In this document: one piece after another, positions 57,139-59,992 of the stretch
Layout: each line of letters opens with the position of its first letter
Position numbering within the stretch: position 1 is the first letter of the stretch
Assembly (NCBI GenBank): GCA_977020255.1
Contig: CDROCS010006380.1
Span: forward strand, 124,001-188,000
Origin: Obrimoposthia wandeli
Lineage: Eukaryota
Length of the DNA: 64,000 nucleotides
Direction: 5' to 3'
Made by a program: the position numbers and the translations under genes
The notes under the pieces: model-generated
Told to the model about the DNA's origin: nothing
Database searches by the model: none
What the model saw: only the letters and a program-made list of their open reading frames with translations

Positions 57139-58140
57139 ATGACTACTAAATTTATTGCACATTATGTTTCAGAAAACGGAGAACTCACCATTAGACGACA
57201 GCTTTTTGATAAGATTTCAAGAATAAATGAAAATATGATATATGAAGAAAGAAGATTAGAATCGTTACAAGCAAAGTTTACTGGTTTAGCCCATAAGAAA
57301 GCTTTAGCAAAAGCAGGATTTTACAAGCACGATGATTCGAAAGATAATGTAAAGTGTATTTACTGTCAGGGAGGAATATCGGGATGGGAGTACTATCTGA
57401 AACCAATGAAGCGACATCAGCTATTTTCCCCAAGATGCCCGTTTGTTTTGAAAATGAATGTTTCAAACGTACCAATAATTGATTCCAGCACCACCCAAAT
57501 TGATTTTGATTCAACTCCAATGGATAAAGTAGTTATTGTGCGCAATAATTATTCTAATGATATTGAAATATCTACATTATCGATTTTCGATCATGTATAC
57601 ATTTGGAATGATTCTTATCGATGTTGTTTCTGTCAGAAAGCAGTACCCCGACTTGAGTTTATTGATACTATGCCCGAAAGAATCTTTCATACTCGAGATT
57701 GTAAAGCATCTAGTATGGGAATCAAGAACGGATGTATTGTAGAATATCATATTAGTAATGATGAAATTGATGCTCAAATGGAAACTCGTCAAATAGTTTT
57801 GCTGAAACGTGATTACAGTCATGATAGAATCAAAGCCGTTTTAGTTAATAGATTTAAAACATTCGGTAACAAATATGATTCTATATATGAGTTTATAACG
57901 GATTTAAGGTCTTTAGAAATAAAATCTGAACCAAAACATCGGATAAATTATCTCGAGTACCTCTTACCAAATCCCGAATGTGTTGTTTGCATGAGCGATG
58001 CGATTTCCGTGGCATTTTTACCATGCGGTCACTTAAACACGTGTATTAAATGTTCAGATCGTTTTATTACATGTCCATATTGCAAGACAATTATCATTAG
58101 ACGAGTAAGAAATATTAGATTTTATAGCATAGGCAATTAA
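57139..58140 (+). CDS. Inhibitor-of-apoptosis protein (BIR + C3HC4 RING), intact
   Basis: BIR: AKAGFY..CIYC-x16-H-x6-C; C-terminal RING CVVC..LPCGH..C..C..CPYC; 333 aa. Confidence 0.93.
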   Translation: MTTKFIAHYVSENGELTIRRQLFDKISRINENMIYEERRLESLQAKFTGLAHKKALAKAGFYKHDDSKDNVKCIYCQGGISGWEYYLKPMKRHQLFSPRCPFVLKMNVSNVPIIDSSTTQIDFDSTPMDKVVIVRNNYSNDIEISTLSIFDHVYIWNDSYRCCFCQKAVPRLEFIDTMPERIFHTRDCKASSMGIKNGCIVEYHISNDEIDAQMETRQIVLLKRDYSHDRIKAVLVNRFKTFGNKYDSIYEFITDLRSLEIKSEPKHRINYLEYLLPNPECVVCMSDAISVAFLPCGHLNTCIKCSDRFITCPYCKTIIIRRVRNIRFYSIGN

Positions 58141-58203
58141 ACAAATCTAAAAATAGATGTTCAAATAGTATAAATAGAAGAAATCAGTTTATTATAATCA
58201 GAA

Positions 58204-58751
58204 ATGCTACTTCACAATATCAAATTAGTGAATATTAATTACAAGGGAATGGTTGTAAGTAACATTCAACACTTACCATTTCGAACTTCGAAGCCTCATC
58301 AGTATCGACTCAAGTGTGAAGGTTACACTATTATCATTTTCAAATCTGGTAATTTATTTTTACATTTATATATAATTATAATTTAGGGACATGTATAATA
58401 ATGGGTTGCAAAACAATGCTGGATGAAAGCACTCTTCCTTTTGATATAAAAATCGAAAGAATCCAATCAATCAGTCTCAGCAGCAATCTAGAAACATCAA
58501 TAAACCTAAACAAGATGAGCAAGAGTATGGGTTCGGAAGCTGTTTACGAGCCAGAAATCTTCCCGGGACTTCGATACGTCAAATACAATCCCCTATGCGT
58601 GAACATATTTGCGAGCGGAATGATTATGATACTTGGTGTTAAATCTTTAAATTATGAGTATCTGATTGGATGTATTTTGTTTAATATAGATCTTCACACT
58701 TGTGTTATTTATTTCCTAAACCAAATAGTTTTAAAAATAGATTTATCTTAG
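58204..58751 (+). CDS. TATA-binding-protein-fold protein, 2 exons (58204-58348, 58387-58751), 169 aa
   Basis: Splicing the 38-nt GT-AG intron gives IIFKSGTCIIMGCK; second repeat YEPEIFPGLRY..VNIFASGMIMILGVK resembles TBP YEPELFPGLIY..LLIFVSGKVVLTGAK. Confidence 0.88.
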
Positions 58752-59224
58752 AGACAAAGACATCACATGTCATTACTTGCAAATAGTTGCAAATAGTTGT
58801 AATTTGCAAAAGTTGTAATGTGGTCTAAGAATAGATTTATCTTAGAGACAAAGACATCACATGTCATTACTTGCAAATAGTTGTAATGTGGTCTAAAAAT
58901 AGATTTTTCATGGGTTATAAACAATATTTGATTTGCTTTATTATAAAATGGATAAAATTTTTGAATGTAAAGAGGTTCAGGATGCATTAAAAGATCTTGC
59001 TTCAGTTATTCTTAATGCTTTAATTAGGAAAAATAATCATGAGTAATATTTATTTGTAGTTTATTTAACTCTTTAGGTTACGTCATCAACTACATTTACA
59101 TGAGATGTTAAGTACAATGGAAAGATTGAATAATACTCCAATCAAATCATATGATGAAACTGATGCTCCAATGAAATCAAACCTCGTTTAGTATATAAGA
59201 CTAAATTGACTCGGAATTGATAAA

Positions 59225-59992
59225 ATGGAGAAAATAAATTCAGCACCACCGCCAACAACAGTATCGCCAACAACATCATCGCCAACAACATCATCGCCAG
59301 CAACATCATCAGTAACATCATCACCACCAGCAACAACAACAACAGTTATAAGAAGAGAAGAAACTATTGATGAAGTGACGATAGAAGAAGAAATTATTAT
59401 AGATCCAATTATTGAAGATAAGAGACGGATAGATTTTTTAAATGCTTTGGCTTTTATAGAACCCATAATAGCTCATGCTTCGAGTATGAAAATGAACCAC
59501 ATGACCCATCTTTTTGATAGTTTGTTTAGTGCTAGATTTACTCAACTTAATGTAGAAAAGTTAAACAAAATCACGATGAGTGAGATTTTAGTAAATCAAT
59601 TATATATTGGTAATTATCGAGATGGGTTTGATGAAACTAATCTTTTGAACTCCAATTTCACTCATGTAATCAATACATCTATACTGGATAAAATATCTTA
59701 TAAGAAATTAAAATATACTTCTGGCTTTGTAAACTCAAAATTAGGAGAAACAATAATGAAGTATTATAAACAGACTAATAATATAATTAAAGAAACTATC
59801 GAAAATGGTGGTAAGATTTTAGTATGTGGTCATTATGGTAGTTTACATGCTGCTTGCATTGTTATTGCATATTTATCTCATTCGATTGGTGTTACTGCTG
59901 CTTCCAATATTGTTAAAGCTAAACGGACTATTGCTGCTCCTAATGAAGCTATGCTTCATCAAATACGTATTTTTAATCGTTATCATGTGTAA
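59225..59992 (+). CDS. Dual-specificity phosphatase-fold protein lacking catalytic Cys and Arg (pseudophosphatase)
   Basis: EILVNQLYIGN..FTHVIN..GGKILV-CGHYGSLHA-ACIVIAYL..VKAKR..PNEAMLHQI; Ser/Thr/Pro-rich N-terminus. Confidence 0.88.
   Translation: MEKINSAPPPTTVSPTTSSPTTSSPATSSVTSSPPATTTTVIRREETIDEVTIEEEIIIDPIIEDKRRIDFLNALAFIEPIIAHASSMKMNHMTHLFDSLFSARFTQLNVEKLNKITMSEILVNQLYIGNYRDGFDETNLLNSNFTHVINTSILDKISYKKLKYTSGFVNSKLGETIMKYYKQTNNIIKETIENGGKILVCGHYGSLHAACIVIAYLSHSIGVTAASNIVKAKRTIAAPNEAMLHQIRIFNRYHV

Follow-up and report, generated by a model that had tools for sequence, protein, structure and literature searches.

Mavericks and adintoviruses are usually described by a fixed core of polymerase, integrase, ATPase, protease and capsid proteins. 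The available parts of the adintovirus description by Starrett et al. 2021 (PMC8502044) also report homologues of IAP (inhibitor of apoptosis) and Bcl2, and the legend of its Fig. 5 labels a "TBP" (TATA-binding protein) gene in the map of MELD virus; an IAP is likewise among the genes drawn on the leafhopper adintovirus genome maps in the accessible portion of a preprint (bioRxiv 10.64898/2026.07.28.741253). We analysed a stretch of 64,000 nucleotides (nt) from Obrimoposthia wandeli (contig CDROCS010006380.1, positions 124,001 to 188,000; hereafter the window), which contains E3, a partly decayed integrated Maverick/adintovirus-like copy that runs past the window end at 64000, and two other copies, E1 and E2. 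Left of its packaging ATPase, E3 carries genes for an IAP, a TBP homologue and a protein with a dual-specificity phosphatase (DSP) fold. An initial annotation of this DNA was aware of no such combination in a Maverick; given the published IAP and Bcl2 homologues and the MELD virus label, the novelty is narrower than first claimed. The IAP is already known from such elements, and the three genes do not form a conserved cassette. What is new is a clade-specific octamer, TATAAACA, on the core genes, as against GTATATAAG-type boxes on the cassette genes.

A compact TBP homologue and two classes of promoter box

The list of open reading frames (ORFs) contains three on the + strand, at 57139-58140 (333 aa), 58401-58751 (116 aa) and 59225-59992 (255 aa), and their assignment as IAP, TBP-fold and DSP proteins was borne out, since all three score above the Pfam curated cut-offs and PDB sequence searches agree. 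For the 116-aa ORF, the Pfam TBP score was 44.9 bits (cut-off 22.9; 1.1e-11 on exon 2), and its PDB sequence matches were archaeal and eukaryotic TBPs, the best at 7e-13. The TBP domain is there as annotated, but the ORF is only the second exon of a gene that spans 58204-58751. The E3 ORF belongs to a family with eight metagenomic proteins of 135-160 aa, which are 45-52% identical to it and have about 55 extra N-terminal residues, and the E3 counterpart of these residues was found upstream in another frame, in the ORF 58204-58386. Between the two parts of the E3 gene lies a stretch of 38 nt, 87% A+T, with GT at its start and AG at its end, giving a structure of exon 1 (58204-58348), a GT..AG intron (58349-58386) and exon 2 (58387-58751). 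The TBP-like gene of E1, 57% identical to that of E3 at the nucleotide level, has a 39-nt GT..AG stretch (10899-10937) at the same codon; this gene is degraded, yet the intron that it has in common with E3 is recognisable. Prompted by the common stretch, we joined the two E3 exons as they stand and obtained 169 codons with a single terminal stop, which align end to end with residues 4-148 (of 151) of the family member P0003 at 52% identity. Truncation of the ORF at its N terminus by a frameshift was dropped as an explanation because E1 has GT..AG at the same codon, and a C-terminal helix encoded in a downstream frame was dropped because the family alignment shows a complete C terminus.

Among the related loci (designated L), the TBP-like genes of L001 and L003 have no such intron stretch, and in that of L090 a different one is seen elsewhere in the gene, GT..TAG, 42 nt long and in frame (L090:2654-2698). 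These very short, AT-rich GT..AG introns of 38-42 nt in the TBP-like gene of an element suggest a host with very short introns and intron gain, and they document spliceosomal introns of this length inside a gene of such an element. Spliceosomal introns in the gene argue for its transcription in the nucleus by RNA polymerase II (Pol II).

The AlphaFold2 (AF2) model of P0003 (pLDDT 89.8, pTM 0.76) has a shortened N-lobe without the second long helix and a complete C-terminal TBP repeat. Its 44 best fold matches in the PDB are all TBP cores and cover both lobes (E ~1e-8, TM 0.70, ~173-177 aligned columns). Of the two-repeat TBP saddle, the C-lobe is supported by sequence and the shortened N-lobe by predicted fold only. 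Identity within the compact family is 45-55% across lineages; an E-P-E-[IL]-F block and the C-lobe strand I-F-x-[ST]-G are invariant, and in the tool alignments the invariant C-lobe blocks align with identical blocks of archaeal and plant TBPs. The fold matches of P0003 in BFVD were large-DNA-virus TBPs, all of at least 186 aa, and, more weakly, the herpesvirus BcRF1/UL87 class.

The core genes of E3, E1, L090, L091 and L001 are preceded by a fixed TATAAACA (TATAAAC(A)) located 32-38 nt upstream of the ATG; in E3 it stands 35 nt upstream of the ATPase and 32 nt upstream of the adenovirus pX-like ORF. The + strand sites are at 60444, 61093, 61555 and 63597 in E3 and at 11265, 11574, 12400, 14767 and 15199 in E1. 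The four accessory genes of E3 (IAP, TBP-like, DSP and a 94-aa ORF) each have instead a GTATATAAG-type canonical TATA box (GTATATAAG or GTATAAATAG) 33-38 nt upstream of the ATG, the cassette-gene boxes being TATATAAG or TATAAATAG in place of TATAAACA. The individual distances are 36 nt for the IAP (TATATAAG), 35 nt for the TBP-like gene (GTATAAATAG), 33 nt for the DSP (GTATATAAG) and 38 nt for the 94-aa ORF (GTATATAAG). Across E3, E1, L090, L091 and L001, 22 of 35 + strand TATAAAC sites lie 20-60 nt upstream of an ATG ORF, mostly at 32-38 nt, where 7% would be expected (binomial P ~1e-17). In the window we counted 21 octamer sites, where 6.1 ± 2.6 would be expected (0/100 shuffles reach 21); 18 of them fall inside E1, E2 or E3.

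When the region upstream of the ATPase was compared among loci, the box was present in all eight assessable ones with an ATPase identity of 52% or more to E1 and in none of the 56 assessable ones that are more distant, many of which show a canonical TATAWAWR at that place. One and the same clade has the compact TBP and the fixed octamer. Taken together, the two box types suggest a virus-encoded TBP that may act on its own promoter class.

The IAP and DSP-fold genes and the recurrence of accessory genes in related loci

The E3 IAP consists of one canonical BIR (~residues 28-116), a degenerate Cys/His middle and a C-terminal C3HC4 RING, with Pfam scores of 51.1 bits for the BIR (cut-off 22.9; 2e-13) and 44.7 bits for the zf-C3HC4_3 RING (cut-off 27; 1.2e-11). 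The BIR zinc ligands Cx2Cx16Hx6C are all present in the translation, and the RING is intact. PDB sequence matches were NAIP, cIAP/cIAP1, XIAP and DIAP1, and the BIR was aligned to the NAIP and cIAP BIRs. The protein is like the viral IAPs (of baculoviruses and other insect viruses) and the cellular ones (cIAP, XIAP, DIAP1, NAIP) in its BIR ligands and C-terminal C3HC4 RING, but it has a single canonical BIR and a degenerate middle, and its C-terminal half is kin to RING-only proteins of ~150 aa in two related loci (L001:448-900, - strand, and L091:419-880, + strand; E ~3e-6). The E3 IAP may be a BIR fused to a protein of this RING-only family, or the RING-only proteins may be IAPs minus the BIR. 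No close named homologue of the IAP was obtained, no large-database search having been made for it, and exact-sequence look-up returned no record identical to the IAP or the DSP. In the related locus L020, a 193-aa BIR+RING IAP lies at the other side of the contig and is hardly alignable with that of E3 (31% over 48 residues). Because the two barely align and occupy different positions, IAPs are recurrent in the lineage but not one conserved gene.

The DSP gene encodes an acidic, S/T/P-rich N-terminal part followed by a DSPc domain (~residues 111-255), which scored 47.8 bits (cut-off 33.5; 1.6e-12) across its whole length. PDB sequence matches were DUSP19/10/22 and STYX (2r0b), at ~1e-7. We read its catalytic residues from an alignment with PDB DUSPs and the eight best matches of the full HMMER scan. 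Ser/Asn stands in place of the general-acid Asp, Gly in place of the nucleophilic Cys and His in place of the Arg, and the loop reads C-G-H-Y-G-S-L-H where active enzymes read H-C-x-x-G-x-x-R. The fold is kept, and the Cys and Arg of HCx5R and the general-acid Asp by which an active phosphatase is recognised are absent. The replacement of all three residues marks the protein as a predicted pseudophosphatase, as had been proposed from the sequence at the outset, and makes it a first candidate pseudophosphatase cargo of such an element.

The best DSP match among 1.84 billion representatives in the full HMMER scan had an E-value of 2.4e-11 at 36% identity, and the matches were generic DSPs of at most 36% identity from protists and metagenomes, so that no donor can be named; a word-index search with the DSP returned nothing. 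Poxvirus VH1 and baculovirus PTP are active viral DSPs and are not among these matches. STYX and the E3 protein both have the DSP fold and a Gly at the position of the catalytic Cys, which is the STYX signature (PMC8907265), but STYX keeps the Arg of HGx5R where the E3 protein has His and has lost the Asp too, so even phosphate binding is doubtful. No orthology is implied, the E3 DSP being ~30% identical to many DSPs alike. Two repeats lie next to the gene: a 61-nt tandem duplication (58732-58792/58826-58886) between the TBP-like gene and the DSP resembles the sequence upstream of the E2 IAP (34865-34941), and a 23-nt segment proximal to the IAP promoter recurs exactly (57073-57095 = 58885-58907), which hints at rearrangement where the DSP sits.

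Recurrence of the accessory genes was examined in a census of 86 related loci (344 kb). For the BIR census, single-sequence phmmer missed the L020 IAP and was replaced by a regular expression plus Pfam, and the IAP counts are a lower bound. A TBP-profile scan of IMG/VR found large-virus TBPs only, and their loci were left out of the census. Besides E1 and E3, members of the compact TBP family are found in L001, L003, L004 and L090, and the TBP-like gene adjoins the ATPase in E1, L001 and L090. More distant TBPs are present in L018 (169 aa) and L062 (1707-2294, - strand; a canonical two-repeat TBP of 196 aa, Pfam 3.6e-33). A further transcription-type cargo, a C2H2 zinc-finger protein, is encoded by another more distant relative (L050:5144-5671). 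BIR/RING IAPs were found in L020 and L082, and in E2 within the window, and RING-only genes in L001 and L091. No PTP loop or DSP profile match was found in any of the 86 loci, and none of them carries an IAP, a TBP-like gene and a DSP together.

E1 and L090 have ~370-450 bp between the TBP-like gene and the ATPase; E3 has 1.7 kb, with the DSP inside it along with the 94-aa ORF and small duplications. By these comparisons, the left arm between the end region and the ATPase appears as the variable accessory region of the clade. The copies of the TBP-like gene in E1 and of the IAP in E2 that the initial annotation had pointed to were recovered by tblastn/blastn. Its view that the three genes are a family trait can be kept for the TBP-like and IAP/RING genes, which recur in relatives, but not for the DSP. 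We consider it quite probable that the TBP-like gene and the IAP are traits of the lineage and the DSP is not; the DSP, and probably also the 94-aa ORF, would be an acquisition specific to the E3 lineage.

Element class, gene layout and preservation

The integrase of E3 matched Pfam rve at 1.7e-13 on 61651-62433, and the Pox_A32 matches of the ATPases (5.5e-6 in E3, 1.3e-6 in E1) are both above the 22.8-bit cut-off. A Chromo match at the integrase C terminus was significant in L020 (8.8e-8) and below threshold in E3 (0.0025), L090 (0.00068) and L091 (0.0028). For the 340-aa ORF we found 15 metagenomic relatives; with 14 of them an AF2 model was built (pLDDT 67.7), whose top six Foldseek matches are the mavirus penton (E 6e-5 to 1.4e-4, prob 0.97-0.99, with a TM of only ~0.24), followed by the Sputnik penton. 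A capsid-like protein of ~410-440 aa, broken in E1, gave sub-threshold matches only (a PDB "major capsid protein" at E 0.31; Pfam DJR-like_dom at E 0.039). PolB was identified in syntenic relatives (PF03175 at 1.4e-21 in two ORFs of L090, and at 1.4e-27 in L020). No Peptidase_C5 match, the mark of an adenain, was found in the ORFs scanned in E1, E3, L020, L090 and L091, where the gene may be outside the window or too divergent. We tested the presence of an OTU domain on PolB against the adintovirus definition of bioRxiv 10.1101/2024.03.25.586562: by Pfam none was detected on the L020 PolB (DNA_pol_B_2 only) or the two L090 PolB ORFs (Endonuclease_7 and DNA_pol_B_2), in which it may be too divergent. 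No named adintovirus protein was returned by any protein search. The pPolB, the rve+chromo integrase and the A32 ATPase of the relatives, together with the penton-like fold of the 340-aa ORF in the window, support the original identification of E3 as a Maverick/adintovirus-like element; that it is a Maverick/Polinton-type, adintovirus-like element and that the domain identities hold is, taken jointly, very probable.

L001, a 6.2-kb ENA contig, has a RING-only gene, the TBP-like gene, two orphans, the ATPase (80% aa identity), a pX-like ORF and the start of the integrase; its ATPase (4933-5571) has an in-frame TAG at the position of a Trp in its relatives, and an alternative genetic code was dropped as an explanation, this being a single case. 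On L090, an 18.5-kb contig, the TBP-like gene, ATPase (75% aa), integrase (60%), penton-like gene, 407-aa capsid-like gene and PolB follow in the order of E1 and E3; its first gene (3-1589) encodes a bacterial-type DUF3536 protein (E 8e-100), and the contig may be chimeric. In L091, the RING-only gene stands directly upstream of the ATPase and is followed by the same core genes. The more distant 14.7-kb contig L020 has a 1494-aa PolB, the ATPase, the rve+Chromo integrase and the same order of the virion module. An IMG/VR locus, L002, combines a parvovirus-type PLA2 domain with an A32 ATPase and an integrase, which is given as the hallmark set of Alpha-adintovirus in the available parts of PMC8502044. 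Scans of IMG/VR with the penton-like ORF and with the ATPase returned nothing.

In E3 (Table 1), the DSP is followed on the + strand by the 94-aa ORF, the A32-like ATPase, the 142-aa pX-like ORF, the rve integrase and the 340-aa ORF. The initial annotation had described three intact, adjacent ORFs left of the ATPase. The three are present and open, but the 94-aa ORF, a 32-aa ORF and at least two - strand ORFs lie there too, and intactness does not extend to the ATPase and the integrase of E3. Besides the three (the TBP-like gene with its intron), the pX-like ORF and the penton-like gene are open. Neither short introns nor homopolymer errors explain the frame changes in the ATPase and integrase, where the junctions have no additional sequence and nearby homopolymers are at most 4 nt long; these changes are counted as frameshifts. 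Read in two frames, the E3 ATPase is 78% identical at the aa level to that of L091 and 74% to the E1 copy, and homologues of the pX-like ORF come after the ATPase in 15 loci. The 105-aa left-arm ORF and the 94-aa ORF gave no Pfam match and the 69-aa left-arm ORF no significant one; the 94-aa ORF has no relative in the related loci. In E1, a 90-aa ORF (11298-11570) occupies the slot of the 32-aa ORF. An 85-aa ORF with a Met-Gly start (61581-61838) overlaps the start of the integrase in another frame, with TATAAACA 26-38 nt upstream, and in L090 and L091 the sequence immediately upstream of the integrase ATG encodes a similar N-terminal peptide. Only one end of E3 can lie within the window, the right end being beyond 64000. 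AGGTCA, a half-site-like motif, characterizes the ~43-bp repeats left of E3, which may be the terminal repeat of the element, and short inverted matches to these repeats occur at 36244-36287, beside E2.

Table 1. Features of E3 and its in-window copies, in window coordinates
Feature	Position	Strand	Basis or remark
AGGTCA-rich tandem repeats, ~43-bp unit	55250..55720		repeat search; candidate E3 terminal region
Left-arm ORF, 105 aa	55866..56183	-	kept in E2 (42% aa)
Left-arm ORF, 69 aa	56477..56686	-	kept in E2 (71% aa)
IAP, 333 aa, intact	57139..58140	+	Pfam BIR and zf-C3HC4_3
Compact TBP homologue, 169 aa spliced	58204..58751	+	Pfam TBP, family alignment, splice model
ORF, 32 aa, status uncertain	58948..59046	+	TATAAACA 32 nt upstream
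DSP-fold predicted pseudophosphatase, 255 aa	59225..59992	+	Pfam DSPc
Orphan ORF, 94 aa, within ORF 60067-60435	60151..60435	+	ORF listing
Packaging ATPase (A32/FtsK class), broken by one frameshift	60479..61116	+	Pfam Pox_A32, AAA_24
ORF, 142 aa, weak adenovirus pX-like C terminus	61125..61553	+	Pfam Adeno_PX 0.006, below cut-off
rve integrase, weak C-terminal chromodomain, one frameshift	61651..62680	+	Pfam rve; two frames vs L091
Penton-like (minor capsid) protein, 340-aa ORF, intact	62677..63675	+	AF2 model and Foldseek
Homologue of the ~110-118-aa gene (g118) preceding the capsid-like gene, cut by window end	63722..64000	+	tblastn with L091 g118, 46% identity
E1, degraded truncated relative	10770..16241	+	tblastn/blastn
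E2, rearranged fragment	33886..36013	+	blastn

E1 has the gene order of E3: TBP-like, 90-aa ORF, ATPase, pX-like ORF, integrase, penton-like, g118 and capsid-like. Its ATPase is intact (215 aa), the integrase and the penton-like gene are each in 3 frames with 2 stops, and the capsid-like gene has 1 stop and is truncated. No IAP, DSP or PolB was found in E1, and tblastn with the L090 PolB was negative across the window. In E2, a left arm whose IAP is broken adjoins an inverted segment from the end of the penton gene: by blastn E2 is 78% identical at the nucleotide level to 55920-58019 and 92%, inverted, to 63600-63745. Its IAP copy (34983-35863) is in 3 frames with 2 stops and is ~71% identical to the E3 IAP at the aa level.

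The window itself is AT-rich (mostly 27-35% G+C), with satellite arrays, transposon remnants and a run of N at 21877-22022. Arrays lie at 21918-22819, 24235-25000, 27316-28000, 36725-37800, 40971-44123, 45807-48800, 50957-52349 and 2322-2615, with units of 12, 16, 21, 24, 37-38, 49 and 83 bp; a 21-bp array flanks the N run, and the 49-bp array at 2322-2615 looks derived from tRNA-like (T-arm) sequence. Transposase remnants of mariner type (45121-45516, - strand; HTH_48 6.7e-8) and pogo/CENP-B type (29927-30271, - strand; CENP-B_N 2.4e-4) were identified. Pfam scans of the other ORFs gave only such mariner/pogo-type remnants, no recognisable host gene was seen in the window, and Rfam had no match there.

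Proposed working and comparison with known systems

We hypothesize that host Pol II would transcribe the accessory genes from their host-type TATA boxes. Judged by family membership, the IAP would protect a cell with an active element from caspase-dependent death, its RING serving as a ubiquitin ligase. The TBP homologue, itself made from a host-type TATA promoter, would nucleate Pol II initiation at the TATAAACA promoters of the element, and the outcome would be an early-to-late switch such as beta- and gammaherpesviruses run with a TBP-like protein on TATT promoters. The pseudophosphatase could be a non-catalytic binder of, or scaffold on, a host phospho-signalling component, as STYX-type proteins are, or it could have no role. 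In its widest form, the hypothesis is that the clade would run a self-contained two-step programme on host Pol II, in which host TBP serves the canonical-TATA genes, among them a mini-TBP of 150-170 aa, and the mini-TBP in turn serves the TATAAACA replication and virion genes, with the IAP and the DSP-fold pseudoenzyme added in one lineage to keep the cell alive and rewire signalling; we think it rather unlikely that this form holds at every step. That the mini-TBP drives the TATAAACA promoters is a tentative proposal, and a specific role of the DSP is more doubtful still. Our best explanation as a whole, with E3 as a fairly young but already damaged copy from a clade otherwise known only from metagenome contigs, seems reasonably likely.

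Several observations weigh against this explanation. The association of TBP and octamer comes from one clade, within which the loci are phylogenetically non-independent, and L091 has the octamer but its contig ends before the expected place of the TBP gene. The octamer also precedes some - strand left-arm ORFs and stands at a few sites without an ORF, so a "core/late only" description is too clean. Within the window, where E3 is cut at 64000 and E1 is truncated, we saw no PolB, no protease, no confidently assigned capsid protein and no terminal repeats. The TBP homologue has a truncated N-lobe without the long helix that is recognised by fold alone, only the C-lobe being recognisable by sequence, so DNA binding could be impaired, and TATAAACA contains a classical TATAAA core that host TBP could bind and use. 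The last two points would suit a decoy that competes with host TBP for TATA or TFIIB and damps host or element transcription, for example in latency, instead of driving TATAAACA. The superposition of the predicted fold on both TBP lobes and the conservation of the family in the one clade with the fixed octamer speak against a decoy without excluding it; on the whole we consider it unlikely. Alternatively, a helper (giant) virus might use the octamer as its promoter, independently of the element's TBP, and available parts of the literature do report helper-virus promoter motifs in virophages and polinton-like viruses. Yet the spliceosomal introns of the TBP-like gene point to transcription in the nucleus, the box is a variant of TATA whose distance from short leaders is Pol II-like, and no helper-virus sequence is present within the window, which makes a helper highly improbable.

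The state of the copies bears on whether the cassette acts at all. With one frameshift each in the ATPase and the integrase, E3 could be a dead insertion whose cassette ORFs are open merely because it is young, the pseudophosphatase being a future pseudogene and none of the products acting on the host; E1 and E2 are heavily degraded, the surroundings are rich in satellites and transposons, and the DSP, observed once and without a relative of more than 36% identity, lacks all three catalytic residues, a loss that could itself be decay. Against decay, the IAP retains every BIR and RING zinc ligand, the TBP-like gene retains the family-invariant residues and both splice sites despite a ~43% nucleotide difference between E1 and E3, the DSP keeps a 255-codon open frame in DNA of 31% G+C, where stops are frequent, and stays above the Pfam cut-off over its whole domain, and all four cassette genes retain a TATA box at a fixed distance. 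We give decay a small but real chance. Instead, at least one of the genes (the DSP most readily) might be a host gene or retrocopy that came to lie here by chance, by nested insertion or by misassembly, as the lack of any close homologue of the DSP, or of a relative in the related loci, and the hint of rearrangement in the 61-nt duplication and the 23-nt IAP-promoter copy just upstream would allow. However, element genes of the same strand flank the DSP, which has no detected intron and matches its neighbours in its GTATATAAG box at -33, and its G+C of 0.315 resembles that of E3 elsewhere; in E2, too, the IAP is linked to the left arm (78% nt), and the TBP-like gene adjoins the ATPase in three copies or relatives. 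A host origin is, in our view, very unlikely.

Compared with adintoviruses and Maverick-Polinton elements, the clade has in common the pPolB, the rve integrase with chromodomain, the A32/FtsK ATPase, the pX-like protein and the penton-like and candidate capsid genes, as seen in the relatives, and an IAP as accessory gene. It differs in that no OTU was detected on the PolB of the relatives, no adenain was found, and the capsid protein was not recognised by Pfam or PDB sequence search; E3's clade has no PLA2X or gasdermin gene, a PLA2 being found only in the more distant L002. We found no described adintovirus map that lists a TBP beside the ATPase, or a DSP; none of the papers listed by full-text search combined Polinton, Maverick or adintovirus with phosphatase terms, and the Polinton surveys compared make no mention of TBP, apoptosis or phosphatase.

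Large DNA viruses mostly bring their own RNA polymerase, and no RNA polymerase gene was seen in the E3-type element. The TBPs of such viruses (phycodnavirus, mimivirus-like, marseillevirus, ascovirus, phaeovirus EsV-1-53 and the B263R homologue of abalone asfa-like virus) have the TBP fold in common with the compact family, and the C-lobe of the E3 protein is clearly homologous to cellular TBP. In contrast to them, the compact family is smaller (~150-169 versus at least 186 aa), has a truncated N-lobe and a spliceosomal intron, and belongs to an integrating element of ~15-20 kb.

The closest parallel in working is with herpesviruses, in which, according to the available parts of the reports, Epstein-Barr virus (EBV) BcRF1 is described as a TBP homologue on late TATT promoters (PMC4922670, PMC7162547). 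With EBV BcRF1, ORF24 of KSHV (Kaposi's sarcoma-associated herpesvirus) and UL87 of human cytomegalovirus (HCMV), as far as the accessible parts of PMC4922670, PMC4893493 and PMC7162547 describe them, the proposed common scheme would be a nuclear DNA virus on host Pol II with a TBP-like factor and a variant TATA on a subset of genes. This is analogy, not kinship, the fold matches being weak (E 2e-3 to 3e-2), and the proteins of the herpesviruses are large, have several domains and depend on five partners, whereas binding of the mini-TBP to TATAAACA is putative. With a clade that repeatedly has a TBP beside the packaging ATPase together with an octamer of its own, expression timing in an integrating virus of 15-20 kb becomes directly testable by transcripts. 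If the scheme is true, no smaller virus would be known that has a TBP-plus-promoter code of its own.

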